Sequence record: NC_010811.2
Reading direction: 5' to 3' (one strand)
DNA length: 64,000 nucleotides
Position 1 is the first letter of the stretch. Each line of letters opens with the position of its first letter. Below the pieces are notes generated by a model that was given only the letters and a program-made list of their open reading frames with translations, did no database searches and was not told the DNA's origin. Positions 4,521 through 60,692 of this stretch are shown in pieces. Made by a program: the position numbers and the translations under genes.

Positions 4521-4528
4521 AATTTGAT
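4521..4528 (+). promoter_or_regulatory. AATTTGAT motif (putative phage late promoter)
   Basis: Intergenic copy about 97 nt before the ATG at 4626; recurs upstream of many structural genes. Confidence 0.5.
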
Positions 4529-4625
4529 GCTGTATGCGGCGCGTCTCTCCTCGCCGCGCTCGGAGGTTCCCTGCCTCCTTAGCCTCACTGATAATACGAA
4601 CACACCATAGCACAACAGGGATTAT

Positions 4626-4985
4626 ATGTTGAAGAATGCAGTACACCGTCTGCGGGCTACCGCCGTTCAAGAGCTGGAAGAAGAGCAAGAAGTCGTTGCT
4701 CAATTCGACCGCACCAAGGACAAGGAACTGCGAGATCTGCAAAACGCTATGCGTGGGGGTGGAGTCGTCTTCAAGTTGGATAAGTACCACCTCTACCATA
4801 AAACGAATCAACGGGAAGTCGCCGAGGAGTTGATGACTGTGTTGAAGATCTTGGATCAACTGGGCCACAAGGCTCGTGTTGTTCCCGGGGTCCTTGCACG
4901 TCCCACCTTCAGCGTGAAGTGTGAAACAGGTCTTGTTCTCCAGCGTCTCAACAACGACGTCCGCCTTTTCTTCTTTATTCCTTAA
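4626..4985 (+). CDS. Small hypothetical protein with AxxRL leader (putative internal head protein)
   Basis: Starts MLKNAVHRLRATA; 119 aa. Confidence 0.6.
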   Translation: MLKNAVHRLRATAVQELEEEQEVVAQFDRTKDKELRDLQNAMRGGGVVFKLDKYHLYHKTNQREVAEELMTVLKILDQLGHKARVVPGVLARPTFSVKCETGLVLQRLNNDVRLFFFIP

Positions 4986-4994
4986 GGAATCATC

Positions 4995-5489
4995 ATGAGT
5001 CAACAGATCAACCATACGCAAGCCAAAGCTGCGCTGACGGCTGCCGGTTTTCCGGTGTCGGCTGGCAGCAACTGGAACAACGTGGACCAAGGTTCGTGGG
5101 ACCAGTTCGCAGCCAGCGCTGCCTACGGAAAAGTCGCCTACGACCTGTACTCGACCAACTACGGTTTCTCGTTCCCCGTGATGCCGGACGCGGTGGCCAA
5201 TGCTGCTGCGAGCGGTGCCTACAGCGCCACTCTGGGTGTGACGCCGCTGACCGCTACGCATGCGGTTGCCATCACCAACTTCGCTTGGAATCTGGTGGAA
5301 ACCAACGGTCCGGGTACGTCGTACGTGTGGGACTTCGGCGACGGCACCGGCACGACGACTACCAGCACGGCAACGGGTCCTGCGAACCACACGTATGCAA
5401 CGGCTGGCTCGTACACGCCGAAGGTCACGGTCACGGTGGGTGGCGTTCCGCACCTCATCTCGGCCGCAGCTCCGGTCGTGGTGTCGTAA
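4995..5489 (+). CDS. PKD (Ig-like) domain protein, probable virion surface/decoration protein
   Basis: Canonical PKD signature YVWDFGDG...NHTYATAGSYTPKVTVT; SD-like AAGGA upstream. Confidence 0.8.
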   Translation: MSQQINHTQAKAALTAAGFPVSAGSNWNNVDQGSWDQFAASAAYGKVAYDLYSTNYGFSFPVMPDAVANAAASGAYSATLGVTPLTATHAVAITNFAWNLVETNGPGTSYVWDFGDGTGTTTTSTATGPANHTYATAGSYTPKVTVTVGGVPHLISAAAPVVVS

Positions 5490-5806
5490 TGTACGCCCGT
5501 CGCGTTCGTTCTCGAGCGCGAAACGGGTACGGCATATCCTCCATCCGGCGCGATTCGTATTCTACGGTGAACGGTATGAATACGAAAGCCGGATGGTGGG
5601 AACTCCATCGGCAAGTTGAGAAACGATCCGGTGGGCTATGCGAAGCCCGGATCGCCGGAGTGCGATGCGGTAAGCGCGGCAAGGACGTTCACCACATCGT
5701 AAAGCTGAGTGATGGCGGTACCAACTCGATGGCTAATCTTATCCATCTGTGTGAAGACTGCCATGACCGTAGACACAACCACATGTTCCGGAGACGGAAG
5801 AAATGA
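5489..5806 (+). CDS. Small HNH endonuclease
   Basis: ATG at 5489 overlaps the previous TAA. CEA..RC...DVHHIVKLSDGGTNSMANLIHLCEDCHDRRH is a zinc-binding HNH motif. Confidence 0.85.
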   Translation: MYARRVRSRARNGYGISSIRRDSYSTVNGMNTKAGWWELHRQVEKRSGGLCEARIAGVRCGKRGKDVHHIVKLSDGGTNSMANLIHLCEDCHDRRHNHMFRRRKK

Positions 5807-6114
5807 CGTACAACATCAGCGCAGCAACAAAGCGTCTCCAAGGTAGCTTGGAAGTCAATGCCAACAAACTGAAGACAGCCAAAGATGTGCATCGTGCACT
5901 GTCCTTCTACCCAGGTGTCGTGAAAGACAAGGGGATCATGGCCGAGCTTGCCGAAAAGGGGGATGCGCCAGCACCGAAGGATGCTTTCGTTGAGGTACGC
6001 GGGTCGCACATCGTTCCGAAGCATCTCGAGCACATGCACGATCTCGGGATCGAAATCGTATCGATCGAAGTTCTTGGTAGCGCTCATTACGAGCTGCAGG
6101 TGAAATTCCACTGA
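5803..6114 (+). CDS. Small hypothetical protein with AAxxRL leader (putative internal head protein)
   Basis: Starts MTYNISAATKRLQG; 103 aa. Confidence 0.65.
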   Translation: MTYNISAATKRLQGSLEVNANKLKTAKDVHRALSFYPGVVKDKGIMAELAEKGDAPAPKDAFVEVRGSHIVPKHLEHMHDLGIEIVSIEVLGSAHYELQVKFH

Positions 6115-6121
6115 AGACATC

Positions 6122-6508
6122 ATGGCCTACGACATCACAGCAGCAGTCAGCCGCTTGGCTGGCACCAAGTGTGCAGTGTTCGCCGATGCACACAGCGAAG
6201 CGGGTATCGCGCTGAAGGAGATCGCCAAGATCCTGGGTCCGCACTTCCTCAAGGACGAGCGGCCCGGCGAGCAGGTCATCATCTGGCGTACTTCTCAGTT
6301 CAAGGCTGAGCTGTCGCTGAACTTGGACGACGACGTGCTGGACTTCACGTTCAAGGACAAGGGCGCCACCGCTGGCTTCTCGGCCGAAGGCTACAACGCG
6401 CGAACCCTGTTCCAGGACATTCGGCACAACATCACGCAGTACCGTCCGACCAAGAAGGTGCCGACGGACGTGCAGATGGTTCGTGACAAGTTCGAACATC
6501 TGCAATAA
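6122..6508 (+). CDS. Small hypothetical protein with AAxxRL leader (putative internal head protein)
   Basis: Starts MAYDITAAVSRLAG; 128 aa. Confidence 0.65.
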   Translation: MAYDITAAVSRLAGTKCAVFADAHSEAGIALKEIAKILGPHFLKDERPGEQVIIWRTSQFKAELSLNLDDDVLDFTFKDKGATAGFSAEGYNARTLFQDIRHNITQYRPTKKVPTDVQMVRDKFEHLQ

Positions 6509-6517
6509 GGAACGATC

Positions 6518-7420
6518 ATGGATCAAGAACGACTGAAGCAACTCATCGCGCTGTTCCTCGAAGCAAACCCGGAACCCAGCGACGCGCAGTTCCACGCGTT
6601 CGCCGAGTCGCTGGGCGTGGACAAGGAAACGCTGGAAGCTGTGTGCTACGAAATGCTGGGCGCTGAAATTCAGCACGAGAAGGACGAAGGCGACGATCAG
6701 CAGTTGGAGGAGCTGGTGGAAGGCGTGTCCACGCACTTCCCTGAAGGCATCGAGGTCGAAGACTTCGGTGTGGTGCAGGCCACGGCGCGACTGCGCCTGA
6801 CCGCTGCTGAAATCGTCGAGCAAGAAGGCGGCGGACAGGGTGAAGTCGGTATCAGCGAACAGCAAGAAGTGTTGCAGGGTGAAGGCGACGCCGAAACCAC
6901 GGACACCGACAACCTGCTGTTGACGGATGGCGCTCCGGTCGGTGATACGACGGACGACGAGATGCAGGACAGCGCGTTGAACGACGGCGCAGGTCCGGGG
7001 GATACGGGTTTGGGCATCGACACGCAGAAGGCATTGCTGCTGAACGATGGGGCACCTGCTCTGCAGCTGGAAAGCGCTGCCCTGCGGCTGACCGCTGGTG
7101 AACGACCTGAAGTATTCGGGATGCCTGCTTACCATCTGTCCAAGAGCAGCGGCACGATCGACCAGCTTGGTCAGGTAGCCGACCGCAAGCCCGAGAAGAT
7201 CACTGGCATTGCAGTCAACACCCCGAAGGGCACAAAGAAGTTCTACTTCTACGGGTCTTCGTCGCTCACCAAGAAGGTCGGCGCCTTCATCAAGTTCAAG
7301 GGCATGAACGGCATCGTGGACGTGCTGGGCGTCATCGACAAGAACGGCAAGGTCAAGACCGGCCAAGAAGGTGCCACCTACGATCGTTCTGACCGGCGTC
7401 CGTACTACGTCTTTAAGTGA
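6518..7420 (+). CDS. Acidic pro-region plus basic C-terminal domain; putative head core/cargo protein
   Basis: About 190 aa rich in D/E with two internal motifs (ATARLRLTAA, SAALRLTA), then about 108 aa Lys-rich beta domain. Confidence 0.6.
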   Translation: MDQERLKQLIALFLEANPEPSDAQFHAFAESLGVDKETLEAVCYEMLGAEIQHEKDEGDDQQLEELVEGVSTHFPEGIEVEDFGVVQATARLRLTAAEIVEQEGGGQGEVGISEQQEVLQGEGDAETTDTDNLLLTDGAPVGDTTDDEMQDSALNDGAGPGDTGLGIDTQKALLLNDGAPALQLESAALRLTAGERPEVFGMPAYHLSKSSGTIDQLGQVADRKPEKITGIAVNTPKGTKKFYFYGSSSLTKKVGAFIKFKGMNGIVDVLGVIDKNGKVKTGQEGATYDRSDRRPYYVFK

Positions 7421-7427
7421 GGGACCC

Positions 7428-7727
7428 ATGTACGACATCAAAGCCGCGGTCAATCGCCTGCAGCTTACGGCCGACGCCAAGAGCACCATCATGATGCGTG
7501 TGGAGAAAGCGCTGGAAGCTGCGGGCATCGAGTGTGAGGTTGCTGGCAACAGCATTCAGGCGCCGCAGGCTCGCGTCCCGGAAGTCCTGCGTATCCTCAA
7601 GACGCTGGGCCTGCACTACATGGGGCCCCAGACGCGAGGCAATCACACGTTCAACTACAATCGCACGAGCAAGGAGTTGGGATGGATCGACTACTGCCCG
7701 CGTCGCGAACGTATCGACTTCGACTGA
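7428..7727 (+). CDS. Small hypothetical protein with AAxxRL leader
   Basis: ATG at 7428 after GAGGGA; MYDIKAAVNRLQLTA. Confidence 0.65.
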   Translation: MYDIKAAVNRLQLTADAKSTIMMRVEKALEAAGIECEVAGNSIQAPQARVPEVLRILKTLGLHYMGPQTRGNHTFNYNRTSKELGWIDYCPRRERIDFD

Positions 7728-7734
7728 GGGTTTC

Positions 7735-8067
7735 ATGATCTCAATCAGTGCTGCGCTTTTGCGCCTCGCGTCTACCGAAGTACAGGCCGGTTCCCCGTCC
7801 GCTGCCATCAACGCAATGGAATACGTTGAGCAGACGGTTCGCAAGGCAGGGCTGGCCGTGCAAGACATCGATCACCGGGACACGACTCACATCGCAATGA
7901 CCATCAGCGGTCAGTTCGTGCCGGTGCTCAATGCGCTGACCAAAGCCGGATTCGTTCCGGACCGTACGCAGAAAAAGGGCAGCTTCTACAAGCGGCAGGG
8001 CATGGGTACGATCCGAGTGACTGCCGGTGTCTCGTTCCGTGAAACCATCGTCATCTGTCTGGGTTGA
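7735..8067 (+). CDS. Small hypothetical protein with AAxxRL leader
   Basis: ATG at 7735 after GAGGG; MISISAALLRLASTEVQA. Confidence 0.65.
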   Translation: MISISAALLRLASTEVQAGSPSAAINAMEYVEQTVRKAGLAVQDIDHRDTTHIAMTISGQFVPVLNALTKAGFVPDRTQKKGSFYKRQGMGTIRVTAGVSFRETIVICLG

Positions 8068-8070
8068 CCT

Positions 8071-8778
8071 ATGAACAGTCCCTTCCTCTTCTCGCTGGGG
8101 GTGGCGGTTGCGGATCAGGCACGAGCTCCGCAGCCCACAAGCATTCCCCCAGCGCTCAATCCGTCGAACATCGATCTGTGGTCTGAAGCGGTGAATGGCG
8201 TGCGTGTGAAAGACGTGGTCCAGCATTGGGCACGTGCGCTCAATCGCTACCTGAACCTGTGCACTCAGAACGATCGCTTTCCGTTCCAGCAACTGCACAC
8301 GTCACCCAACGATCAGATCGTCGATATCCTCAAGGATGTGCGCCGTACGTTCGTCAAGTACGTGGACCGTCATCAACTGTATCAGAAGATGAAGATCCGC
8401 ACGGTCGATCGTCAGGTGCGCATGACCGAGACCGGGTTCGTAATCAGCGTGGTGGCGCATGGTCGCATCGAAGACCCGACGTTTCCGCAGATGCTCCTGG
8501 GTTTGAAGCCGACTGGTGATCAGTTCCCATTCGTGCAGCCGCGTCCTCGTTACGAAAAGCAACTCAACCAGTGGCTGAAGATGTGGGCCACCAATCCGGC
8601 GTACGACAATCCAGAGCGTTGGGAGCTGGGATTCGAAGTGAGCGTGCCCATGTTCCCGGATGTTCCGGGCAACGGCATTCCCACCAAGGACCAACTCCAG
8701 TACTTCATCCATCACATCCTGTGGTTGCCTGTCATGAAGGCGACCCGGCCCCGTGGCATCATGCATCGCTTGGTGTGA
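8071..8778 (+). CDS. Hypothetical protein
   Basis: 235-aa ORF tiling with its neighbours; phage-like codon usage; no recognised motif. Confidence 0.6.
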   Translation: MNSPFLFSLGVAVADQARAPQPTSIPPALNPSNIDLWSEAVNGVRVKDVVQHWARALNRYLNLCTQNDRFPFQQLHTSPNDQIVDILKDVRRTFVKYVDRHQLYQKMKIRTVDRQVRMTETGFVISVVAHGRIEDPTFPQMLLGLKPTGDQFPFVQPRPRYEKQLNQWLKMWATNPAYDNPERWELGFEVSVPMFPDVPGNGIPTKDQLQYFIHHILWLPVMKATRPRGIMHRLV

Positions 8779-8793
8779 CGGCGGTAAATAGGG

Positions 8794-8838
8794 AGGCTGC
8801 CCCGGCAATTACTGTCGCGGCAGCCTTCTTGCATTTTG
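8794..8838 (+). terminator. Putative intrinsic terminator
   Basis: AGGCTGCC (8794-8801) and GGCAGCCT (8819-8826) form a stem followed by a T-rich tail. Confidence 0.45.
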
Positions 8839-8852
8839 GACGCACACATCAC

Positions 8853-8860
8853 AATTTGAT
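8853..8860 (+). promoter_or_regulatory. AATTTGAT motif (putative late promoter)
   Basis: Intergenic, about 64 nt before the SNF2 ATG at 8925. Confidence 0.5.
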
Positions 8861-8924
8861 TGCAAATTTCCCCGATTTGTGGTATCAAATCGTAGTAGTC
8901 CAAAAACCGATAATGGAGCCCTAG

Positions 8925-11900
8925 ATGGCGAATCCAACAATGGTGCGCGCTGACGCAACACGTCTGCGTCCGACGACCAACCTCATCATTCCACCGGGAC
9001 TCACTCTCCCGCGTAAGGAACTGAAGCAGAACTTCATGTACGTGTACACCGGCGCCTTCACGGGCACGGGCAGCTCGTTCATGACGCGTTTGTGGGCTTC
9101 CTCTTTCTTCCCGAGCCTCACCAACAGTCCGAAGTTTGGCAAGACTCGTCCTCGCGCGGTTGCCGATGGGCTGGCCAAAGAACTGCCGATGAACTTCCTG
9201 CGGCTGAAGAAGGTGGACACGCCGAACGATCCGCACTTCGTGGCCAGCGTTCCGCTGTATCAGTTCGCGTCGCATAGCAGCGAACGCACGCTGCGCTTCC
9301 TCATGGACCTGTTCATGGGCCAGCGCTGGTCCAAGACCTTGATCCAGCACACCGCCGAGCAACTGGATGAGGTGAAGGAGTGGAACCAGCAAGCGGCAGA
9401 AGCGCCGAAGGACCAACTGAGCGAGCGCGTGCTGCCCGCATCCCACGTCATCAACAACATGCGGCTGGACGCTATGGGCAGCGAAGCGCTGCGTCAGTGT
9501 CTGCTGCAAGTGCGGATCCAGTCCAAGGGTCTGTACAACGTGATCTTTGCTGACTTCAAGATCCGCAAGGAAGAAGCTCAGCAGCTGACGACCACGGAAT
9601 GGTCGATGCTGCGGTCTATCGACCTGTATCCGTTGCTCCTGCACTGGGTGCGTACCACCTTCGGTGATCGTGGACAGGCGCCGGTCGCGAGCTTCCCGGT
9701 CTCGAAGATCGCGTTCAGCCTTCCGCCGTCGCATGTGGAAAGCGCTCGCGTCAACGACCTCGGCATTTCCGTGGGTCCTGACGGTGCTCCGTACTTCCTA
9801 CCCCGGTCAGTGGACAAGAACCAGACCATCCTGTACGAAGATCGTTACACGGGAGCGGGCACTCGCAACGACGGCAGCTTTGCGCTATTGGATACAGAGC
9901 AGGGCGCCGAAGCGATGAGCTCGGGCCACGAGCCGAAGACCAAGCTGCCGCACAACATGGTGGTAGCCGTCGACTGGCTGAACAACAAGTACAGCTACAC
10001 GAACACCGAAGGCATGCTGTCGGTGATGGACCTCACGCGATTCCAGCCGGCGAACGTGGCGCACATCCACGAGCTGCTGCATTCGCGATCCATCAACGAG
10101 AAGCACGTGTCGTGGTTTGTGTCGCTGGGCGAAGCCGCAGGCGTGCCGCTTACCGCCTTCGAGACGCTGCCGTCGGATTTGGAGGACGTGCAATCCGAGA
10201 CGATGAAGGAAACGCTGAGCCGCACCGCAGGTCCTCTGCTGTGGTTCAAGACCGCTCGTCAGTCGTATGCGCAGGACATCAACGATCTGGTGCCCTTCGC
10301 GTCGATCTCGGTGAACGGCTATAGCGCGATGCGTCCGCTGGCACGCTACTTCAAGCTGATCGAAGCGGCTGTGCGCAACAACATCGAACCCGTCTACCTG
10401 AAGTACAGTGTGATGACGGTGGCCGAGATGTTCTCGTGGCTGGTGCTCATCACGCACTACACAGACGATCTGCCGCGACTCAAGGCTGACGACGCAGCGT
10501 ATCGCCATGCCGCGCTCAATCAGCGCGTGGACCCGGACTACGAAGTTCCGAGCATCCCGCTGATGGCCCCAAACATGGGCTTCCTGCCGCACCAGAAGAA
10601 GGTGCGCAACCTGATGAAGGACAGCCCGGACTTCGCAATCATGCCGGTGCAGACGGGCGGCGGCAAGTCCATCCTTCTGCTGACCGACCTGCTGCTGGAG
10701 TTCAAGGCCAATCGCAACGAACCATATCTGGTGTTGTGTCCGTCGCACTTGGTGCCCAACTACGTGAAGGAAGCAGTGTACTTCACGGGCGGCAAGCTCA
10801 ACGTGATCGCCATCACCAATCCGGCCATCCGCCAGAACGGCTGGAAGCGGTTGCAGGCCATCATGATGGCGGCACCTCGCAACACGGTCGTGGTTGTGGC
10901 GCTGGACACGTTGAAGTTCCGTCCGCGTACTGTGTCGTACGGCACGACTCCGGTCGACGTGTTCCCGGTCATCGACTTCCTGCGTCAGTTCAAGTTCGGC
11001 TACGTGGCAATCGACGAGGCACACCGCATCAAGGGAGCGACTGCTCGCAACAAGTCAGTGATGGCACTGGTCGCTGACATTCCGAAGAAGCGTCTGGCGT
11101 CGGGCACCTTCGTGCACGATTCGCCGTCGGACTTGGCGATGACCATCGCTGCGTTGGATCCCACGCTGTTTGGTACGCGCGAGGAATTCAACGACAAGTA
11201 CGGGTTGGAGGTGCGTGGAGGCCGCGTTATCAAGTGGAAGCCCAACGCACAGCGCGAGATCATGCAGAAGATCCGCAGCCGCGTGGTGATCGCCGGTGCA
11301 ATGCGCAAGGAATGGGCTGCGTTCCTGCCCAAGAAGGTGGAATGGGTTGGTGGTGTCAACTTGACTCCGGCGCAGCAAGCAGTGTACGAAGATCTGTTGA
11401 ACAAGGTCATCGAGCAGATCGAGCAGGACGCCAAGACCAACAAGGCGTTGCAGGACTTCGTGAAGGGACGCCACGCCAAGGACAACGTCCGTGACGATGA
11501 AGCGGACGTGGAAGCCGAGGACGAAGTCGAAGACGAACGCGACGATGTGGATGAGGACGCTGGTGAAGATCTCAGCGCCATGCTCAACCCGTATCTCGCA
11601 CGCCTCGAACAGTTCTTGGTGGCACCGGGCAGCGATCCTTTGGGTGCAGCACTGCTCAAGGGTGAAGACCTGCTGAGCCCGAAGGTTGCGCTCATCTACA
11701 AGCGAATCCGCCTACACCTTGAGGGCGGTGAAGCTGATGGCAAACCATACGGTCCGTTCCCAGGCAAGGTCATCGTGTTCTGCAATCAGGTGGCCGCAGC
11801 CGAAGAGATCTTCAACAGCGCACCGCCTGATCTGAAGAAGAGTGGTCTGCTGTACAAGGCCAGCGACAAGGTGGAAATCCTGTCGCAGCTGGAGAACAAC

Positions 11901-13592: not shown

Positions 13593-13598
13593 GTCTGC

Positions 13599-13606
13599 AA
13601 TTTGAT
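13599..13606 (+). promoter_or_regulatory. AATTTGAT motif (putative late promoter)
   Basis: CTGCAATTTGAT, about 57 nt before the ATG at 13664. Confidence 0.55.
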
Positions 13607-13663
13607 GGCGTTGGGCGGTTGCTTCCGCCCTCGCCCATCTACGTACCACTCAAGAGGATCAAC

Positions 13664-14143
13664 ATGAGCTTCGATTTCTCCAAGATCAAAGAAGCGGCTC
13701 GCGCCGCAGGCTACCTGCTGTCCGAAGGCGAGCACATCCTCGCGGAAGACTTCCAACATCTCGAGCACTGGGCCTTCTCGCACTTCGGTCTGAGCCGTCA
13801 AGACCTGCATTACGGTCTGGCGTATCCGGGCCTGCTGCCGAAGAACTTCCCGGGCCAGCCGGGTGCAGAACAAGCTCCCGCACCGGTTGCTGCTCCAATC
13901 CCGGAACCGACCAACGTGGAAGCTCCGGCTGCTGAACAAGCGCCGGACACACCGCAGGCACCGGAAGCGACGCCGGAACCGGCTGCTGAACAGGCACCGA
14001 CCCCGGAAGCTGCCCCGCAAGAACCGGCTGCTGAACAGCCTCCGGTCCAGGAACAGGCGCCGCAAGAACAACCGGCTGCTGAACAGCCTGCCGCTGAGCA
14101 AGCTCCGGCTGCTGAGCAACCGGCACAAGACGCTGCTCAATAA
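13664..14143 (+). CDS. Pro/Ala/Glu/Gln-rich low-complexity protein
   Basis: ATG after AAGAGGA. Folded-looking N-terminal ~60 aa followed by repeated PAAEQ/APE units. Confidence 0.65.
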   Translation: MSFDFSKIKEAARAAGYLLSEGEHILAEDFQHLEHWAFSHFGLSRQDLHYGLAYPGLLPKNFPGQPGAEQAPAPVAAPIPEPTNVEAPAAEQAPDTPQAPEATPEPAAEQAPTPEAAPQEPAAEQPPVQEQAPQEQPAAEQPAAEQAPAAEQPAQDAAQ

Positions 14144-14158
14144 TCTGGAGGCTAAGTC

Positions 14159-14557: not shown

Positions 14558-14566
14558 GGAGGCGCT

Positions 14567-15828: not shown

Positions 15829-15864
15829 TGAGTTCCTTGTCAGCTGACGAACAGCTGATCTTCA

Positions 15865-15901
15865 GACCCCGCCCTGCGCAAGCTCGGCGGGGTTTCTTTT
15901 T
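15865..15901 (+). terminator. Intrinsic terminator
   Basis: ACCCCGCC...GGCGGGGT stem followed by TTCTTTTT. Confidence 0.7.
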
Positions 15902-15922
15902 GACTAAAATCCCCCGTTCTGC

Positions 15923-49478: not shown

Positions 49479-49479
49479 C

Positions 49480-50127: not shown

Positions 50128-50142
50128 CAAGCAGGAATAGAT

Positions 50143-53100: not shown

Positions 53101-54903
53101 AACACAGCAGCTACACAGACGGAGACTTCTCTCAACCTGTCGGCTGGTGGTTCCATCAGTTTGGGTGGTGGTTCGCAAGTGCTGACCACGATCTTCACCG
53201 GAACACTGACGGCAAACACCACAGTTGTGCTTCCGGCGCCGGGTCGTTGGACGTTCTACAACAACACGAGCGGCGCGTTCACCGTCACACTGTCTAACGG
53301 TGCGGGCTCCACGTTTGTGTTGCCGCAGACGGCGAGCGTTACCGTGATCAGTGATGCAACGCTGGGAGTGATTCCCGCCATCACCACTGGTCTCACGCAA
53401 TCCACGTCGGACAACAGCACGAACCTTGCGACCACGGCCTTCGTTAAGGCTGCGATCTCAGGAAGCGTGTCCGGGGTGTCGTCGTTCAACACGCGGACTG
53501 GTGCAGTCACGTTGCAAGCAAGCGACGTGACCGGCGTTGGCGGGGCACTGCTGTCTGGTGCTGCGTTCACTGGGGCGGTCACCGTTCCTACGCCTTCCAC
53601 TGGTGACAACTCGACCAACGCGGCGACCACTGCATTCGTGCAGACTTCGCGCCTCAACGGAACGTCGATCTCGCTGTCGAGCGCCAACGTCACGTTGACT
53701 GCAGCGCAGTACGGAACGCGAATCATCCTGCTGAACGGTACGTTGACTGCGAACGTCAGCGTGACATTCCCCACAAGCGGTTCGTGGGAAGTGTACAACG
53801 CGACGACGGGTGGGTTTACCGTCACGTTGACCAACGGCAGCGGCACGACGTTGACTCTGGCGCAGAACAACAGCGCCACGATCATGTCGTACAGCGGCGG
53901 CATTACCAACAGCAACTCGGTGGCCGGTGTGTTGCCTGTTGCAACGACCACGACACTGGGCGGCGTCATCGTTCCGGCGGCGGGCGGTCTGTTGGTGGAT
54001 GGCAGCGGTAATCTGTCGGTGGTGGTCGCCACTAGCTCGGCGCGTGGTGTGGTGAGTCAGGGTACTGGCGTATCCATCAACGCGAGCGGTGTGCTGTCTG
54101 CTAACGTGGTTTCTGTCGCAGGCAAGACGGGAGCGGTGACGTTGGTGGTGGGTGATGTTAGCGGCGCGGCAGCATTGGCCAGCCCCTCGTTCACGGGGAC
54201 TCCGACGGCGCCGACTGCTGCGGCCAGCACCAACACTACTCAACTGGCGACCACTGCATTCGTGCGGAACGCTGTCGCAGGTGTGACTACGGTGTCGCTC
54301 ACCAACGTCAACGTGACGTTGACCGCGGATCAGGCGGCGGCTGCCATTATCAAGCTGAGCGGAACGTTGACGGGTAACGTGCAGATCACGTTCCCAACCA
54401 GCGGATGGTGGGAGGTGTACAACACGACGACGGGCAGCTTCACTGTGACGCTGACCAACGGGACGGGTAGCAACATCACCATCCCGCAGAATCAGATGTT
54501 GAACGTGGTGAGCGACGCAACGAGCGGTATGCTGCTGGATGGTGCGGCGGCTATCGCCCGGATAAGCGTCAACGTGCAGGGAAGTCCAGCGGTGGGATCG
54601 GAAATCTTCTATCCGGTGACCAACGCGCTGACGCTTCCAGCCAATCTCGTGGGAACCAACGCCTATGGGACGGGGACCAGCGGCAGCAGCGCGCCGTACA
54701 CGGTCAACGTCTACAAGTACGTTGGGAACTCTGCGAGTGGCACGCAGGTGGGCACCATCACCATCAATCCTGGATCTGCGTCCACCTTCAGCACTGTAGG
54801 CGGTACGAGTGTGTCGTATGCGGCGGGAGATCGACTGAGTTATCAGTTCCCAACCGCCAATCTTGCCCTGTTCGCGGCAACGTTGCTGGGTACATGGCAG
54901 TAA
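50143..54903 (+). CDS. Long repeat-rich tail/virion fibre protein (1586 aa)
   Basis: V.SVN/SFN.RTGxVxL repeats, LGGV repeats, 8 full ASPxFTGTPTAPT...TxxATTAFV repeats and three LxGTLTxN..FP..G.W..YN domains. Confidence 0.8.
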   Translation: MSILSYPITVVTGSLQTYNIRARWVSQLPLEALGSVDACVLQEAVGPAAPGLYWWTGRVWMLAVPYDSVTDAIIHDGEMTIGYNLSQPLVLGSAADTVNMWRNGQPLPGNTIAPDDSVWAGIVSPNPSVVGVTSVNHKTADANGDVEVGISDIPGLTTELAARIKTVNSVGPDSNGDVAVTLAGLPDTNFVPSPAIDGFTLVYQTASGKWVPSRYVPSAVRTVNSTTPDVNGNVIVKASAAETVTPTNVSLVANDGSTTGNILLKTVQGTGALTVADNGTHVTLDVPQTVTAVQAATATGGTTLIANDGSTTHIAQIKQLVAGVNVQLSSDGQTVTINATNSSGGGGTLTAVQSTGTGISLVNYDGTSGSTIALIKSVVAGSGITIVQDAQLQTLTIAAIAQVPPVTSVNTKTGDVVLTAADITGFATVAYTGNYNDLQNKPAAYVLPPATATVLGGIKVGSNLAVAADGTLSATAQPLAPATTTTLGGVIVGAGLNVAADGTLSVSGSGVVNSVNSASGALTIAQGSGISVSTVGQTITISATGAGSVTSVGLSLPAALFTVSGSPVTSTGTLTGTLNNQNPNWVWAGPGSGVAAAPTFRALVAADLPVATSTVPGTMYPGPGLAVDGTGKLTIVQSGVVTSFNTRTGDITLQLSDITNAGGAVLASPAFTGTPTAPTPLSSDNSTRLATTAFVQASFAPLASPALVGTPTAPTAATGTATTQLATTAFVNRDFAPIASPTFTGTPKAPTQTAGDNTTALATTAFVQAAISGAVAGVTSFNSRTGAVTLQAGDVTGVGGALLASPAFTGTPTAPTATAGTNTTQLATTAFVQAAIASVPAGVSSFNTRQGAVVLQPADVTGVGGALLASPAFTGTPTAPTATAGTNTTQIATTAFVQAAITSGVPIATTTTLGGVIVKAGLTVDASGNLSANVTTVAGRTGDVVLAVGDVSGAASLSSPAFTGTPTAPTAASGTNNTQIATTTFANTAATQTETSLNLSAGGSISLGGGSQVLTTIFTGTLTANTTVVLPAPGRWTFYNNTSGAFTVTLSNGAGSTFVLPQTASVTVISDATLGVIPAITTGLTQSTSDNSTNLATTAFVKAAISGSVSGVSSFNTRTGAVTLQASDVTGVGGALLSGAAFTGAVTVPTPSTGDNSTNAATTAFVQTSRLNGTSISLSSANVTLTAAQYGTRIILLNGTLTANVSVTFPTSGSWEVYNATTGGFTVTLTNGSGTTLTLAQNNSATIMSYSGGITNSNSVAGVLPVATTTTLGGVIVPAAGGLLVDGSGNLSVVVATSSARGVVSQGTGVSINASGVLSANVVSVAGKTGAVTLVVGDVSGAAALASPSFTGTPTAPTAAASTNTTQLATTAFVRNAVAGVTTVSLTNVNVTLTADQAAAAIIKLSGTLTGNVQITFPTSGWWEVYNTTTGSFTVTLTNGTGSNITIPQNQMLNVVSDATSGMLLDGAAAIARISVNVQGSPAVGSEIFYPVTNALTLPANLVGTNAYGTGTSGSSAPYTVNVYKYVGNSASGTQVGTITINPGSASTFSTVGGTSVSYAAGDRLSYQFPTANLALFAATLLGTWQ
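52135..54275 (+). repeat. Imperfect coding repeats (ASPAFTGTPTAPT...ATTAFV), about 8 full plus 1 partial
   Basis: Counted from the translation of ORF 50143. Confidence 0.75.
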
Positions 54904-54913
54904 GGAGAGCAGA

Positions 54914-57151
54914 ATGGCCTTGAAGTTCGTTGAAGGCTTTGAAACGACGCGTGATGATAACGACTTTCGCACCCGTGGGTGGCTGGCTGCGCCCACGAAG
55001 CGATACGCGTCGCTGGCTCCTGCGAAGACCACGATCGGTGTGACGGGGCTGCGTCGCTTCATCAACAACGGGAGCGACGCAGCCACTACGGTCGGGGTTA
55101 CGGGGGCCACAGACATCGGATACCTGAACACAGGCATCACCGTGAATCAGGCATGGACTGCAGGTGGATTCAGCTGGGGAGCGTCAGCTACTCACTACAG
55201 TGGATCTGCCATCCAGATCGGTGCTGCCGGGACTGGCGGTCCTTCGGGACAGGCGCTCGGATGCATTGACTTTGACGGGACGAACTACTGGGCGTGCACG
55301 TCGGCAACCAAGATCGCCAAGTCCACGGATTTGCTGAACTGGACGAACACGACGGCACAGCCGTCAGGCATCACGCTGTCGTCCACAGTGTCGTTCATGG
55401 GTAGTGGCACGGTTATGGTCGTTCCACAGACCGCCACTCCAACGACGCTTGCGGTGTCGTATACCACGAACGGCGGAACGTCGTGGGCCACACAGACGCT
55501 GGCTACCGGCATCACCACGACGACCGGCGCGCAGTATGGCATTGGGTTCGCTACCGGCAACCCCACGTATCCGCACGGCATCCTCATCGGTATCAGCGAC
55601 AACTCGGCAGCCAATGGGCTGTACATTGGAACGTTGGGTGGTACGTTCGTTCAGGTGATTGGAGGAACGGCCTACACCATGGGCTTCTTTGTTCCACGGC
55701 CCGTGGTCGTTAACGGATACATCTACACGACGGACGCTTCTAACAACGCGACTAGCGCTGGCTTCTACAGCGCTCCAGTGTCGGGCGCCATAAACACCGC
55801 AGGCGCGTGGACTAAGTGGGCGTTGAACAATGTGCCGAATCCGTCGCAGCTCGCATACTTTCAAGGCGCGGACCTGTTCATTATCGGTTCGGTGACCAAC
55901 GGCGCATTTACGATACCCAACACAGGAGGCGTTGGAACACCAGTACCTCCGACTGCGGCCACCACCGCAAGCAATCCGTACACAGCGGCGGGTGTCTACG
56001 GAATCGCAGCGTCCAGCAGCACCGCGGTCATCTTCCCAGATGCGTTGAACTCGATCAGCGCCAACAACACGATCCTCACGTCTACGGATGGAGTGACTTG
56101 GAGCCCTCAGTTCAAGATCTGGCCAAACTTGGGTGGAACCACGCTCAATGGATGGTGCACTGTGTTCTACGACGGAACACAGTACGTGGCGGTGGGCGCC
56201 GTTGGCAGTACCGCGCATTCGCAGATCTTGATCTCGACCGACGATGGGGTGAACAACTGGCGCATTCGCTATGCGTCAGACACGTCATCCAACGGCACGA
56301 CCGGCGGATTCAGCGGACTGGGAGTGTGTACGGCCAGCGCAGCACCTACTAGCGGAGGAACGTGGACCGCGGGCACCAACGCAGCGTGGCTCAATACGAC
56401 TGTTCCGTCTGCGGGATCGGCCACCGTCAGCTTCTTCACCACAACCAACAGTGCGACGGCAGCCAGTACCAAGTCGGTGACGACGAGTGGCGCACTCACG
56501 CACTACTACAACATCCAGGCTGTTGCAGTAGCGGGGACCACGAACAGCTTCAACATCAGTTGGTATGTGGACGGCGTGCTGTCTGCTACCAGTTCCAACG
56601 TGGCGCTGGGCACTGGAACCGGTGACACCACGTCGCTGCTCATACTCAACTTCCCACGGTCTGGCGGTTGGCAGCAGTTCGACGACGTGTACTTGACCCT
56701 GGACAACGGTGTTGGCATGACCGGAGTACAGACCATCTACTGTACTGCTCGTCGCCCGACCAATGATGTCCAGGATCAATGGGCACCTACCGGTCAAGCA
56801 ACGAACAGTCTGGCTACCAATCAGCAGGCGTTGAGTTCGCGAAGCGATCGCTATGTGTCCACGTACACAGACGGCGCACAGGACAAGTATTCGTCTTCAG
56901 ACGCGGTGCAGACCACGTACAAAGTGAAGGCCGTCCAGATCGAGGGATACTTCAAGCGACTGTCTACGGTCAGTCCTACCGCAAAGGTGAGTTTGATTAG
57001 CAACGGTCAGCAAGTGGACTCTACGGCGGTGACCGTCGGGACCACGGACATCTTGGCGTCGGCCATCGTGGAAAACGATCCCAATGGTAACATCGCGTGG
57101 ACGCCGGGTTCAGTATCCAACACGCAGTTCTCAGTTACGAAGGTCTCCTAA
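54914..57151 (+). CDS. Putative fibre-associated/receptor-binding protein with beta-propeller-like repeats (paralog 1)
   Basis: AAGGAG SD; MALKFVEGFET; DG..YW/YV and S.DG..W BNR-like motifs; T/G/S-rich. Confidence 0.6.
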   Translation: MALKFVEGFETTRDDNDFRTRGWLAAPTKRYASLAPAKTTIGVTGLRRFINNGSDAATTVGVTGATDIGYLNTGITVNQAWTAGGFSWGASATHYSGSAIQIGAAGTGGPSGQALGCIDFDGTNYWACTSATKIAKSTDLLNWTNTTAQPSGITLSSTVSFMGSGTVMVVPQTATPTTLAVSYTTNGGTSWATQTLATGITTTTGAQYGIGFATGNPTYPHGILIGISDNSAANGLYIGTLGGTFVQVIGGTAYTMGFFVPRPVVVNGYIYTTDASNNATSAGFYSAPVSGAINTAGAWTKWALNNVPNPSQLAYFQGADLFIIGSVTNGAFTIPNTGGVGTPVPPTAATTASNPYTAAGVYGIAASSSTAVIFPDALNSISANNTILTSTDGVTWSPQFKIWPNLGGTTLNGWCTVFYDGTQYVAVGAVGSTAHSQILISTDDGVNNWRIRYASDTSSNGTTGGFSGLGVCTASAAPTSGGTWTAGTNAAWLNTTVPSAGSATVSFFTTTNSATAASTKSVTTSGALTHYYNIQAVAVAGTTNSFNISWYVDGVLSATSSNVALGTGTGDTTSLLILNFPRSGGWQQFDDVYLTLDNGVGMTGVQTIYCTARRPTNDVQDQWAPTGQATNSLATNQQALSSRSDRYVSTYTDGAQDKYSSSDAVQTTYKVKAVQIEGYFKRLSTVSPTAKVSLISNGQQVDSTAVTVGTTDILASAIVENDPNGNIAWTPGSVSNTQFSVTKVS

Positions 57152-57172
57152 GAGATCAGCTTGGAGATAGAA

Positions 57173-59368
57173 ATGACCCTCAAGTATATGAACGGGTTCG
57201 AAACGTGCCGCGACGATTCCGATCTTCGCGCACAGGGTTGGCTGGCCAGCCCCACGTCGGACTATGTAGGTTTTCCAGGAGCGTCGACCAGTGTGGGCGC
57301 CGTCGGCCTGCGTCAGTGGTCAGCAGCGTCTGCAGGCGCAAACGTCGTTGGCGTAGCAGCGGCGGCGGACCCCGGCTATCTGAACACTGGCATCACCGTG
57401 AACCAAGCGTGGACTGCTGGCGGTTTCACTTTCAACGCCAATGCCACCTTCTACGGTGGAACTGCTGGAAACGCCATTGGTTCATTTATTGGAGCCAGTC
57501 AGTACCCGAACCAGATTGTGTACGACGGTACGCAATACTGGGCAATTCAGACCAATCCACTGCAAGTGGTGACGTCTACTGACCTTGTGAAATGGACAGC
57601 TACTCCCGCTCAGCCTTCCGGCTTGAGTGCTACGACTGCCAACAGCGTGTCGTACATGGGTGGAGGCGTGGTCATGGTAGTGACCGCGGGTTCGGCTTCG
57701 GTGTCCTGCTTGTACACGTCGAACAACGGAGTGTCGTGGTCAACGCAGAACTTCGGTGCGTCGGGCGGCGGCTCCATATACGGGGCCGGATGTGCGACGG
57801 GGAACGCCACCTATCCGCACTGCGTCGCCATCAACAGCAGCGCTACGTCCAGCTTCAACGGAGTGTGGGTGGGGACGCTGGGTGGCACCATGACGCAGGT
57901 GACGTCTGGTGGCTATGCGGCAACCGGTCTTCTGTCGCGACCCAAGGTCATCAACGGATACATCATCTGCACGCTGGGCAACAACGGAGTGTACAGTGCG
58001 CAGGCGTCAAACGCCAGCCTCAACACCACTGGCGCGTGGACAAAGTGGACGTACACTGGGCAGAACTTGACTGACGTCAACTACTTCCAGCCAGCGAATG
58101 CTTGGTTCGTGTCTGGTCACCAAGCGGGGGTCGTCAGCATCCCAAATACGGGCGGTGCCGGAACTCCAGTGCCTCCGACCACGGGATCGGGCACCAGTGT
58201 GTACGCAAACCCTGTGTATGGGCTGATGGTGAGCAGCACAAACATCACGCTTGCGGTATTCTCAAACGCCACAGGCAACGTATCGCTGCTCACCTCGACG
58301 ACAGGTGCATCAGGCAGTTGGGTGAACACGTCGCGCGTTCTTCCGTATTTGGGTGCCAGCGTCAACGGCTGGAAGGACGTGTACTACGATGGAACGAAAT
58401 ACATCGTGTGCAGCTACGCAAGCAGCGCAGCGACGTCAGCTTGCATTGCGACCACCAGTGACGGGTTGAAAGACTGGCAGGTCAAGTACATGAGCGATGT
58501 GACGCCCGGCACTACGGGCGGATTCAGTGGACTTGGCGTGTGTGCTGCAACTGCGGCTCCCACATCAGGCAGCGCGTGGACGCAGGTTGGAGGCGTTGCA
58601 TGGCTGAATTGCAGCACGCCGTCTGCGGGCAGTTCCACGATTTCGCTGTACACAGCGGCGGGAACTAGTGCCAACTTGACAGCGACGCAGTCGTCGTCCA
58701 TCCTCACGCATTCGTATGAAGTGCGAGCAGTAGCAGCGGCCACCGCCAACAGCTTCAACATCTCGTTCTACATCGACGGCACACTGCAGGGGACGACGGC
58801 GTCGCCAGTGGCGTTCGGTTCGGGAACCAGCGACACAACGTCGCTGCTCATCCTCAATATGCCACGCTCCGGTAACTGGCAGCAGTTCGACGACGTGGTG
58901 CTGACGTTGGACGATGGGCTGGGTATCGTTGGGCCGCTGGGTCCCATCAACATCGTGTCTCGGCGTCCAACTGCTGACGTCAGCACGCAGTGGACACGTG
59001 TTGGCACAGCAGCCAGCAACGCGCTGTCGGTGAATCAGAATGCGCTCAGCTCGCAAAGCTCGAACTACGTGAACACCTACACCGACGGTGGGAAGGACGT
59101 GTATTCGTCAACGGATACTGTCCCATCCAACTACAAGGTGAAGGCGGTCCAGGTGGAAGCGTACTTTGCCAAGCTGGGGACCAGTGCGCCGGTTGCAAAC
59201 GTCGGCATCAAGAGCGGATCCACTGAAAGCGACAGCGCGAATTTGACTGTGACGTCGGCCAACGCCACCTACGTATCGTCTATCGCGCAGACGGATCCAA
59301 GCACGGGCGCTGCCTGGACACAGACGGGAGCCAACAACTCACAGTTCGTCATCAACAAGGTGAGCTAA
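57173..59368 (+). CDS. Putative fibre-associated/receptor-binding protein (paralog 2)
   Basis: MTLKYMNGFET; colinear with paralog 1 from end to end (DxGYLNTGITVNQAWTAGGF, GGFSGLGVC, PRSGxWQQFDD, YKVKAVQ, KVS*). Confidence 0.65.
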   Translation: MTLKYMNGFETCRDDSDLRAQGWLASPTSDYVGFPGASTSVGAVGLRQWSAASAGANVVGVAAAADPGYLNTGITVNQAWTAGGFTFNANATFYGGTAGNAIGSFIGASQYPNQIVYDGTQYWAIQTNPLQVVTSTDLVKWTATPAQPSGLSATTANSVSYMGGGVVMVVTAGSASVSCLYTSNNGVSWSTQNFGASGGGSIYGAGCATGNATYPHCVAINSSATSSFNGVWVGTLGGTMTQVTSGGYAATGLLSRPKVINGYIICTLGNNGVYSAQASNASLNTTGAWTKWTYTGQNLTDVNYFQPANAWFVSGHQAGVVSIPNTGGAGTPVPPTTGSGTSVYANPVYGLMVSSTNITLAVFSNATGNVSLLTSTTGASGSWVNTSRVLPYLGASVNGWKDVYYDGTKYIVCSYASSAATSACIATTSDGLKDWQVKYMSDVTPGTTGGFSGLGVCAATAAPTSGSAWTQVGGVAWLNCSTPSAGSSTISLYTAAGTSANLTATQSSSILTHSYEVRAVAAATANSFNISFYIDGTLQGTTASPVAFGSGTSDTTSLLILNMPRSGNWQQFDDVVLTLDDGLGIVGPLGPINIVSRRPTADVSTQWTRVGTAASNALSVNQNALSSQSSNYVNTYTDGGKDVYSSTDTVPSNYKVKAVQVEAYFAKLGTSAPVANVGIKSGSTESDSANLTVTSANATYVSSIAQTDPSTGAAWTQTGANNSQFVINKVS

Positions 59369-59369
59369 G

Positions 59370-59627
59370 ATGGCTTCTAATCCCAATGAGAACCTATATG
59401 CGAAGGCCATAGCCGAGCAGGTTGTCTGGGTGGCTGGGGTACCTGCTGAAGCGATCGCGGTCGCTCAGCAGATACTCGTCGTGCAGATGACGGAACCGAA
59501 GGCGCAGGCTGTTGCCGAAAACGTGCTGCTGGTACCCGGTGTCCAGGCGCAGGCGCTGGCCGTCGCCGAACAGTGGCTGTTGGGGGCGCCGACCTACGTA
59601 CAGACCGCTACATGGTGGACAAGTTGA
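59370..59627 (+). CDS. Small protein with an internal repeat (QA.A(V/I)AEQ.L.V)
   Basis: 85 aa; the AKAIAEQ/AIAVAQQ/AQAVAEN/ALAVAEQ unit occurs four times. Confidence 0.55.
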   Translation: MASNPNENLYAKAIAEQVVWVAGVPAEAIAVAQQILVVQMTEPKAQAVAENVLLVPGVQAQALAVAEQWLLGAPTYVQTATWWTS

Positions 59628-59638
59628 ACGAGGAACGT

Positions 59639-60343
59639 ATGCCGAAGATCAAAGCTGAAAAGCAAGCAACTGATCCACCAAAGAACGACAAGGACTTCAC
59701 GTGGCAGAGGAACATGGAGAAGAAGTATAAGGGCGCACCTAAGCGCAATCCAGGATCCGCGCCACCTGAAGGAACCTTCAGCAAGAGTCCTTCGCAGATC
59801 GCCAACGATCTGAAGATGCATTCGAAGGACTACGGGCAAGCGAGTCGTCGGCTGAACAGCTACATCAACCGACAAGGTCGCAATCTTCAGGGAGCGGATC
59901 GTGCGCGACTGTACGATGCGAAGGAACACCTGAAGAATGCCTACGGCCGTCAGGAACATAAGCCGAAGCAGCAGACGGCAGACAGCAGCGCAGGGCCTGC
60001 CCTGTACTGTTTGACGAAAGGACACAACCTTGACGATGGGACAGTGGATTTGCTGACGTCTGTCCCAGATCTACGGGAGAAACAAGCCGTGAACGATCAT
60101 CAGCTACTTGCAGCATGTGCTCGCCTGAAGGCCAGCGTATTGAACTCGGAACAGGATCCGAATCAGCGCATGTCGTCGGTTGAAGTGCAAAGCGACAGCA
60201 CAGTAGTTCCCAACCTGGAAGAGACCAACATCGCAGAATCCACATCTACCATTGATGGACTGGACACTGCGTTCGAGGAGGGACAGGGCGGGGCACCCAT
60301 CAACATCAACGCAGCGCTTCACCGTTTGCAGTCGCCAGTCTGA
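59639..60343 (+). CDS. DUF3175-like N-terminal domain protein with AAxxRL motifs
   Basis: GTFS.SP.QIA..LK...RRLN.YINRQGRNL...RARL..AK..L resembles DUF3175 (from memory); C-terminal LAACARLKA and ININAALHRL. Confidence 0.5.
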   Translation: MPKIKAEKQATDPPKNDKDFTWQRNMEKKYKGAPKRNPGSAPPEGTFSKSPSQIANDLKMHSKDYGQASRRLNSYINRQGRNLQGADRARLYDAKEHLKNAYGRQEHKPKQQTADSSAGPALYCLTKGHNLDDGTVDLLTSVPDLREKQAVNDHQLLAACARLKASVLNSEQDPNQRMSSVEVQSDSTVVPNLEETNIAESTSTIDGLDTAFEEGQGGAPININAALHRLQSPV

Positions 60344-60362
60344 TTGTTGTCAAGGCAGCTAC

Positions 60363-60370
60363 AATTTGAT
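60363..60370 (+). promoter_or_regulatory. AATTTGAT motif
   Basis: About 56 nt before the ATG at 60427. Confidence 0.45.
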
Positions 60371-60426
60371 TTCGGGGGTGGGGGCACCGCCGTTATCTAT
60401 TCTAGCTGCATTGACTGGGACTCAAA

Positions 60427-60639
60427 ATGGACGACATTGATCGCATCCAAGACCGCTACGATCACGAGCATCAACAGGCTATCAATAAGATCCGAGAACG
60501 GGCGAAGAAGTCCTTGATGCCGACGGGGCATTGTTTCTTCTGCGGAGAACAGGTGAAGCATCCGCTTCTCTTCTGTGATTCTTTCTGTCGAGACGACTAC
60601 GAGCGTGAACAACGAAGTCGCCGTATCAACGGTTTGTGA
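60427..60639 (+). CDS. Small C4 zinc-finger protein (DksA/TraR-like architecture)
   Basis: MDDIDRIQD helical N-terminus followed by CFFCG...FCDSFC. Confidence 0.65.
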   Translation: MDDIDRIQDRYDHEHQQAINKIRERAKKSLMPTGHCFFCGEQVKHPLLFCDSFCRDDYEREQRSRRINGL

Positions 60640-60641
60640 TG

Positions 60642-60671
60642 CAAGGGCCTCCTAATTAGGAGGCCCTTTGT
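60642..60671 (+). terminator. Intrinsic terminator
   Basis: Perfect palindrome AAGGGCCTCCTAATTAGGAGGCCCTT followed by T-rich sequence. Confidence 0.7.
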
Positions 60672-60684
60672 CGTTTGACCTGCG

Positions 60685-60692
60685 AATTTGAT
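60685..60692 (+). promoter_or_regulatory. AATTTGAT motif
   Basis: CTGCGAATTTGAT after the terminator, about 38 nt before the ATG at 60731. Confidence 0.55.

Follow-up and report, generated by a model that had tools for sequence, protein, structure and literature searches.

The Ralstonia jumbo phage phiRSL1 has a genome of 231,255 bp with 58% G+C (AB366653.2/NC_010811.2), and the stretch analysed here, referred to as the window, is the 64,000 bp from base 62,001 to base 126,000 of that genome, to which it is 100% identical; positions are window coordinates unless marked 'genome'. A short word, AATTTGAT, recurs in the window in front of structural and lysis genes. It is probably the core of the phiRSL1 late-class promoter, a −10-like box without a −35 partner that is used by the host RNA polymerase (RNAP), with the phage protein ORF224 as its likeliest reader. 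The kind of regulation is well known, as late promoters of one box, to which a phage sigma redirects the host RNAP, have been in the textbooks since T4; what is new here is the sequence class, conserved over a clade of jumbo phages. No description of the word, of phiRSL1 promoters or sigma, or of their counterparts in relatives was met in a literature search that did not cover the 2010 genome and microarray paper, so an earlier description is possible.

The AATTTGAT box and its placement

Eleven copies of AATTTGAT are found in the window, where 100 dinucleotide shuffles give 0.58 ± 0.75 and at most three. Genome-wide there are 17 exact copies, 15 of them intergenic although intergenic DNA makes up 8% of the bases (gene calls made for this analysis, which agree well with RefSeq, give 323 genes and 92% coding sequence); of the other two copies, one is inside ORF011 and one inside the portal gene. 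No 7-mer of the genome is more strongly enriched between genes than AATTTGA, with 21 of its 25 copies intergenic (binomial p about 1e-19). The letters of AATTTGAT can be ordered in 280 ways, with a mean count of 0.46 per word, and the runner-up, ATTTGATA with five copies, overlaps the motif. The shuffle, permutation and intergenic-enrichment statistics rule out chance or a compositional artefact. A preliminary description of this DNA had listed 13 sites in the window, and all of them exist at their coordinates, 11 as exact AATTTGAT and the others as the one-mismatch AATTTGAC at 15923 and as ATTTTGAT at 17568; the genome-wide comparison of intergenic with coding frequency that it had proposed shows that the motif is not equally common in coding sequences. 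Two further sites, AATTTGAG at 48532–48539 (−) and AATTTGAC at 59240 (+), were added by a position-weight matrix (PWM) scan in which intergenic sites score 12 to 23, set apart from the coding background.

The anatomy of the box was derived from an alignment of 21 phiRSL1 sites and from a second alignment of 117 sites over six genomes. The phiRSL1 consensus reads c-y-n-C AATTTGAT G/A-G/T-Y-R, with a weak downstream tail; position −1 of the alignment is C in 11 of the 21 sites and T in none. Nothing is conserved past the fourth base 3′ of the word, with no conserved position from +12 to +47, and upstream every position from −40 to −5 carries less than 0.36 bit, in keeping with the earlier remark that no −35 element is obvious. 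That fourth base is a purine at 20 of the 21 phiRSL1 sites (96/117 over the six genomes), preceded by a pyrimidine at 17 of 21, and a pyrimidine–purine step is the usual signature of a transcription start site. Transcription would start at this purine (+1), 4 nt after the word, which would place AATTT at −11 to −7 and G-A-T, as the discriminator, at −6 to −4. With the purine as +1, AATTT keeps an A at −11 and a T at −7, the two bases captured or flipped out by region 2 of sigma70-family proteins.

The placement of the copies points the same way. All 15 intergenic copies of AATTTGAT aim at the next gene, 14–97 nt ahead of its start; the range of 28–97 nt given previously is right within the window. 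At the shortest gap, 14 nt between the word at genome 152,675 (−) and the start of ORF215, the ribosome-binding site already starts 5 nt past the word, and the next shortest, at genome 161,554, leaves 17 nt between word and start codon. Gaps of 14–17 nt are too short for a separate −10 element, which argues for a core promoter rather than an operator at a distance. Two intergenic regions of the window separate divergent genes, 41,985–42,082 (98 bp) and 48,484–48,612 (129 bp), and both have one copy per strand, each facing its own gene; since promoters must exist in divergent regions, the copies are present where a promoter is logically required. The box at 60685 sits 16 nt past a terminator with an 11-pair stem (60643–60668), and those at 8853 and genome 56,535 come, as judged by eye, after hairpins with T-rich tails. 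The preliminary placement of boxes right after terminators thus holds for these sites and is not general.

Two standard promoter types were tried and set aside. A canonical sigma70 promoter (TTGACA-N17-TATAAT) would carry information upstream of the box, where there is none, and a scan with the sigma70 consensus gave no site in 4,000–23,999 against 4.8 ± 2.1 expected, and two against 6.1 in 44,001–64,000. For a sigma54 promoter, nothing is conserved at −24.

The promoter reading has good support from where the copies lie and how they are oriented, from their conservation in relatives, from the lack of a T4 consensus and from the scarcity of sigma70-type promoters, and there is high confidence that AATTTGAT is a core promoter. 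Short, oriented, AT-rich words before late operons are typical of activator sites too, and the phage encodes small zinc-finger and helix-turn-helix proteins; one gene, ORF187 (phrog_54, DksA-like), lies between two boxes. The word could accordingly be pictured as bound by a late regulator, an activator or a repressor that resembles Mu C/Mor or P2 Ogr, with the core promoter elsewhere. This is very hard to credit, given that no second conserved element stands at a fixed distance on either side, that a core promoter could not be fitted in downstream where the start codon is 14–18 nt away, and that the box is neither a repeat nor a palindrome, unlike most dimeric activator sites.

GC-rich stem-loops without a T run stand directly after the copies at 13599, 17568, 4521, genome 61,947 and genome 230,685, so placed that many transcripts would open with such a structure, which is probably mRNA-stabilising. 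Averaged over the sites, the downstream folding energy of −11.8 kcal/mol is no different from the genome background of −12.0 ± 3.9; downstream structure was dropped as a general feature for this reason, though single strong stem-loops keep their place. The same stem-loops give rise to another explanation, in which the word acts in RNA as an endonuclease site, for host RNase E or a phage enzyme, before a protective stem-loop, and long late transcripts are cut into stable gene-sized mRNAs. AAUUU fits the RNase E preference, the stem-loops without a T run follow many copies in phiRSL1 as well as orthologous sites in relatives, and one box of phage BcepSauron has a terminator-like hairpin after it. 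Such processing is nevertheless highly unlikely. Copies directly past strong terminators (60,685, after the one at 60,643–60,668; genome 56,535) can expect little upstream RNA, the two divergent regions with one copy per strand have no space for any other promoter, eight fixed letters with a phage-specific sixth position (in two Burkholderia phages) are ill-suited to the loose specificity of RNase E, and downstream folding matches the background.

Conservation in related jumbo phages

The relatives of phiRSL1 were found by tblastn with ORF224, which is 57% identical to its counterparts in BcepSauron and BcepSaruman and 47% identical to those in BCSR5 and in Achromobacter phage Motura. The genomes compared were BcepSauron, BCSR5, Motura and four large IMG/VR genomes, here G001 to G004, whose sigmas are 61%, 56%, 37% and 33% identical. 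Exact AATTTGAT is rare in the relatives, and related words rank top or high among their intergenic-enriched words: AATTTGA, AATTTCAT and AATTT[T/A/C]A are enriched intergenically in five related jumbo phages, before orthologous genes. By genome, the intergenic fractions are 9/12 for AATTTGA in BCSR5; 12/25 for AATTTCA(T) and 4/4 for AATTTTA in Motura; 17/20 for AATTTTA, 6/10 for AATTTAA and 6/15 for AATTTCA in BcepSauron; 11/19 for AATTTGA and 15/33 for AATTTCA in G002; and 24/56 for AATTTAA and 18/38 for AATTTTA in G001. In G003 and G004, with sigmas 33–37% identical, other intergenic words are enriched. From the enriched words of the relatives, the core shared across the clade is therefore AATTT-N-A(T), in which the sixth base depends on the lineage.

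The association with particular genes is kept as well. In BcepSauron, the phage's own word stands before 9 of 14 orthologs of motif-bearing phiRSL1 genes and before 10 of the 99 remaining orthologs (Fisher p = 2e-5); the corresponding figures are 4/13 vs 2/107 in BCSR5 (p = 1e-3) and 5/13 vs 9/91 in Motura (p = 0.015). Among 28 IMG/VR capsid loci, the closer relatives carry the word or a near variant (e.g. xGTTTTATGG) together with a stem-loop before the orthologs of ORF134 and ORF135, and the stem-loop before the ORF135 ortholog is found in the same place with unrelated sequence. BCSR5 and BcepSauron both infect Burkholderia and prefer different bases at position 6, so that the reader of the box is probably encoded by the phage and not a host enzyme.

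In the more distant phage Lu11, whose capsid protein is 34% identical, AATTTAA, AATTTTT and AATTTAT occur before head and sheath genes (Lu11 28,465–47,520; 5,790–5,830, 6,225–6,245 and 12,820–12,840 within that locus, L126). The Lu11 record annotates no regulatory feature in the head and tail region. The late box may extend to the PaBG/Lu11 group.

A candidate reader and a proposed circuit

The preliminary description had inferred that the motif is recognised by a phage sigma factor or RNAP encoded outside the window. As to the polymerase this did not hold: phiRSL1 encodes none, and 5 µg/ml rifampicin abolishes phage growth (PMC5468394). Host RNAP is thus needed, as judged from phage growth as a whole, and a phage RNAP as reader was rejected on the same two grounds. 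A sigma gene does lie beyond the window, and a genome-wide search returned it: ORF224 (genome 159,775–160,749; 324 aa) is the sole match to Sigma70_r2, with a PF04542 score of 20–23 bits that falls under the 24-bit cut-off. Sigma regions 3, 4 (PF04545) and 4_2 (PF08281) have no Pfam match in any of the six genome frames. ORF224 matches phrog_17569, 'RNA polymerase sigma factor', with E 9e-117. Metagenomes contain at least 240 relatives of it, many of them on contigs over 200 kb.

The structural evidence comes from an AlphaFold model built with 33 homologs, with a mean predicted local distance difference test (pLDDT) score of 83 and values above 90 across most of residues 30–250. All top Foldseek matches of this model are sigma70 chains, and VIA-align places residues 6–250 on residues 95–448 of E. 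coli sigma70, a span that comprises region 1.2, a shortened non-conserved region and regions 2.1–2.4, with Z 12–14 over 218–236 residues, values that by the tool's own note lie within the range helical proteins can reach by chance. The sigma assignment is sound despite this caveat, in view of the uniform Foldseek list and the Pfam and PHROG matches. Structural alignments stop at sigma70 residue 450–490, apart from one loose alignment to 545, and the C-terminal 75 residues of ORF224, helical with pLDDT 56–70, reach into region 3 at most. A sequence search of solved structures with ORF224 gave chance matches only (chlorite dismutase, E > 0.01). A protein with regions 1.2 and 2 and without region 4 fits a promoter that joins a −10-like box to a conserved discriminator and lacks a −35 element, as a consistency argument only, and ORF224 is, by a slim balance, the predicted reader of AATTTGAT.

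The gene belongs to the operon ORF226-225-224, which has AATTTGAC 17 nt before ORF226 and no GTAAATA, a second intergenic word, directly upstream of the sigma gene. The box of the sigma operon is AATTTGAT in BcepSauron and AATTTNA(T) in Motura, and AATTTNA(T) stands 15–37 nt before the lead gene of the operon in 15 distinct IMG/VR loci with sigmas at least 46% identical. The 300-bp stretch upstream of the phiRSL1 operon box (genome 161,537–161,843) holds no obvious terminator, so that read-through from a GTAAATA promoter at genome 164,258 could prime the sigma. This apparent gap between ORF228 and ORF226 (−) contains two small unannotated open reading frames, one hydrophobic and the second arginine-rich, and the stop codon of the second, a TGA, overlaps the AATTTGAC box. 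ORF227 is annotated on the other strand and seems doubtful. Among the neighbours, ORF228 is a polynucleotide kinase/phosphatase by Pfam and PHROGs, and searches of the same two databases with ORF223, ORF225, ORF226 and ORF229 found no second transcription factor.

In phiRSL1, GTAAATA ranks next among the words enriched between genes (19 of 35 copies) and usually takes the form c-a-GTAAATA-g/a; in Motura, BCSR5, G001 and G002 it is the top intergenic word. Its copies all face the downstream gene, 7–60 nt from the start, and the genes serve replication, recombination and nucleotide metabolism, never the virion. Copies in the window stand at 42009–42015 (−), 48505–48511 (−), 33539–33545 (−), 41056–41062 (−), 28407–28413 (−) and 8784–8790 (+), and before ORF170 and ORF178 the word is arranged in tandem with AATTTGA-type boxes. 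It is probably the 'middle' promoter class, CTGTAAATA, of Erwinia-type jumbo phages. This CTGTAAATA/GTAAATA box of Lu11-, PaBG- and Erwinia-type jumbo phages is like AATTTGAT in belonging to the same clade and in being a single strand-oriented box 7–60 nt before genes, and unlike it in word and in gene set.

These elements can be assembled into a circuit, in which ORF224 would redirect the rifampicin-sensitive host RNAP. It would first be made by read-through from the upstream GTAAATA ('middle') promoter, would then boost its own operon through the AATTTGAC box in positive feedback, and would switch on the head, tail, fibre and lysis genes with a few replication and recombination genes; the proposed order is middle box, sigma, late box with positive feedback.

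Several points weigh against this proposal: (i) two single-box motifs, AATTTGAT and GTAAATA, stand against one recognisable sigma, and the pairing could be reversed, although ORF224 as the reader of GTAAATA is unlikely; (ii) a sigma gene controlled by the promoter class that its product serves has to be primed by some other route, and the read-through suggested here is inferred only from the absence of an obvious terminator; (iii) in the six genomes, 5 of the 17 columns separating 'G-only' from 'non-G' phages lie in sigma residues 7–24, the equivalent of region 1.2, but this covariation with position 6 is not borne out across the IMG/VR loci; (iv) the stem-loops often begin at the first base after the word and, if they are 5′-terminal, the start would lie nearer the box than proposed; (v) AAUUU matches the RNase E preference (RAUUW / RN-WUU) too; (vi) 'late' is a label by association, taken from the identity of the downstream genes, and 8 of the 21 sites precede non-virion genes (topoisomerase IB, ORF159, ORF170, ORF178, ORF226 leading to the sigma, ORF258, ORF299 and ORF342), of which ORF170 and ORF178 have GTAAATA as well. 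The preliminary view of a motif upstream of structural and lysis operons was accordingly correct for those operons and too narrow for the set as a whole. Covariation of sigma residues with position 6 of the box was dropped as a line of evidence because 'non-G' type sigmas often have G at the sigma-operon site in IMG/VR.

The first of these points can be developed into an explanation in which AATTTGAT is a promoter read by another factor, either an unrecognised small gp55/gp33-like pair or a host sigma70 remodelled by the phage, and ORF224 serves GTAAATA or something else. GTAAATA matches the T4 late box in six of eight letters and is the motif most widely common to distant relatives with the same sigma family. 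The sigma operon itself lies behind an AATTTNA box, and a simple cascade would make the sigma a product and not the cause of the class. Orthologs of gp33, like minimal sigmas, occur in group 2 jumbo phages as well (Iyer et al., PMC7824862). Set against this, the six-frame Pfam searches for r2, r3, r4 and r4_2 gave no second sigma-like gene, the conserved neighbours ORF223, ORF225 and ORF226 are without a transcription-factor match, and sigma autoregulation is common; reading by another factor is rather unlikely, and ORF224 is retained as the candidate reader.

In the case of T4, late promoters (TATAAATA; gp55, gp33 and the gp45 clamp) resemble the phiRSL1 box in being a single AT-rich 8-bp box near −10, without −35 and before virion and lysis genes, and in the use of host core RNAP with a region-4-less phage sigma, as proposed here for ORF224. 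They differ in sequence, and TATAAATA occurs zero times in the window, which bears out the earlier label of a non-T4 word; the phiRSL1 sigma operon, moreover, itself has the box. T4 gp55 has about 185 aa and is roughly region 2 alone, whereas ORF224 is larger, at 324 aa, and its fold takes in regions 1.2 and 2 as well as the non-conserved region. RefSeq lists a clamp-like gene, ORF157, in phiRSL1. Promoters of the sigma70 family without a −35 element are also known from Thermus phages (middle/late) and from phiEco32, where they depend on gp36. Extended −10 and −35-less promoters share with the phiRSL1 box a single element in the A(−11)/T(−7) register, a conserved stretch between box and start, and a pyrimidine–purine start. 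The phiRSL1 box differs in having no TG at −15/−14, in a hexamer cAATTT instead of TATAAT, in its unusual conserved discriminator G-A-T and in a reader that is putative. phiRSL1 itself is one of the 'group 2' jumbo phages, which encode a sigma but no RNAP and have a gp23-type capsid (PMC7824862).

A wider generalisation is speculative and rather doubtful: a whole clade of jumbo phages without an RNAP, with phiRSL1, Sarumanvirus, Motura, BCSR5, many uncultured relatives and perhaps Lu11 as members, might have one shared late device, made up of a region-4-less sigma that keeps region 1.2, AATTT with a lineage-tunable discriminator and a self-amplifying loop in which the sigma lies behind its own promoter, its T-rich box maybe read only on hypermodified-thymine DNA as a form of self/non-self discrimination.

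phiRSL1 is a candidate for the biocontrol of bacterial wilt. It and its relatives gain a map of about 20 putative late promoters, likely starts and a candidate sigma, and several start codons that had been placed on a TTG inside the box are probably to be corrected. The system is a compact one for asking how a region-4-less sigma recognises a promoter via region 2 and perhaps region 1.2, and the drift of the promoter word (G, C or T/A at position 6) can be followed across a phage clade. The 12–16 bp box would also be a ready late-specific expression signal for engineering.

Sites in the window and side observations

According to RefSeq, the window holds the head and tail modules (ORF115–146), an inverted replication module (ORF147–170), tail-fibre genes, the lysis cassette (ORF179–181) and further fibre genes to ORF188. 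In the head module, AATTTGAT at 4521–4528 (+) is intergenic, past the ORF119 stop and 97 nt before ORF120, and the copy at 8853–8860 (+), preceded by the T-tailed hairpin, lies 64 nt before ORF129, a 1555-aa helicase-like protein of the head operon. After the latter box, at 8853–8891, stand two short palindromes of box letters (AATTTG..CAAATT and CGATTTG..CAAATCG). CTGC-AATTTGAT at 13599–13606 (+), with its GC-rich stem-loop directly 3′, is 57 nt before the likely ATG of ORF130. CTGC-AATTTGAC at 15923–15930 (+) precedes the ATPase gene ORF134, whose RefSeq TTG start at 15926 falls inside the box and whose likely ATG is at 16004; Motura, BcepSauron and IMG/VR loci have retained the site at the orthologous place. 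CTGC-ATTTTGAT at 17568–17575 (+), again with a stem-loop after it, lies 62 nt before ORF135, a virion protein, which is followed by the major head protein ORF136.

Further along, AATTTGAT at 20820–20827 (+) stands 28 nt ahead of the probable start codon of ORF139, which leads into the tail sheath gene ORF140, and CTGC-AATTTGAT at 25394–25401 (+) precedes ORF145/ORF146, with an orthologous site in BcepSauron. The box had been described as often preceded by CTGC; this is exact at four of the 13 sites (13599, 15923, 17568 and 25394) and fails at the others.

Within the replication module, AATTTGAT at 34943–34950 (−) stands between ORF160 and ORF159, with the RefSeq TTG of ORF159 inside the box and orthologous sites in BCSR5 and BcepSauron. 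In the 98-bp divergent region, the copy at 42024–42031 (−) is 39 nt before ORF170 (Cas4-like) and has GTAAATA 8 nt downstream; back to back with it, the copy at 42043–42050 (+) is 32 nt before the tail-fibre gene ORF171, with orthologous sites in BCSR5, Motura and BcepSauron. In the second divergent region, AATTTGAG at 48532–48539 (−), followed by GTAAATA, lies 48 nt before ORF178/ORF177 (exonuclease) and overlaps AATTTGAT at 48536–48543 (+), which is 69 nt before the holin gene ORF179 of the lysis cassette and has orthologous sites in BCSR5 and Motura. The two opposed boxes overlap at 48532–48543 via an AATT palindrome, an arrangement that may permit mutual exclusion of the divergent promoters.

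Towards the end of the window, AATTTGAC at 59240–59247 (+), with a PWM score of 16.9, is the weakest of the set; it lies inside ORF184, 122 nt before ORF185, and is a possible internal promoter. The box at 60685–60692 (+), past the strong intrinsic terminator, is 32–38 nt before the tail-fibre gene ORF188, and AATTTGAT at 60363–60370 (+) is 56 nt before ORF187. The product of ORF187 (60427–60639, +), which has its own AATTTGAT box and terminator, is a 70-aa DksA/TraR-like C4 zinc finger (phrog_54, E 2e-12). Proteins of the DksA/TraR family bind the secondary channel of RNAP, and by analogy ORF187 may modulate the host polymerase late in infection.

Several annotated starts touch the boxes. The RefSeq starts of ORF115 (genome 61,950), ORF134 (15926) and ORF159 (34947, −) are TTG codons inside a AATTTGAT/C box, and those of ORF130 (13619) and ORF139 (20790) lie upstream of a better ATG with a ribosome-binding site. 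The N-termini of these five proteins are probably annotated too long.

Two further words were seen. CTAACCA is enriched intergenically in phiRSL1 (9 of 13 copies) and lies 0–16 nt before the starts of genes without a Shine-Dalgarno (SD) sequence, for example at genome 56,567, 55,634, 27,437, 95,518 (−) and 194,716 (−) and at 33518 (−) in the window, a placement that suggests a non-SD translation-initiation element. In BcepSauron, about 20 near-identical copies of cGTCAACAATA(A/C)CC, all on one strand, occupy 1,984–27,855 (loci L011–L012), each with a GC-rich hairpin before it and a GGTTATT-like word about 20 nt after it, and the array, within the first 28 kb, has the look of a series of early promoters.

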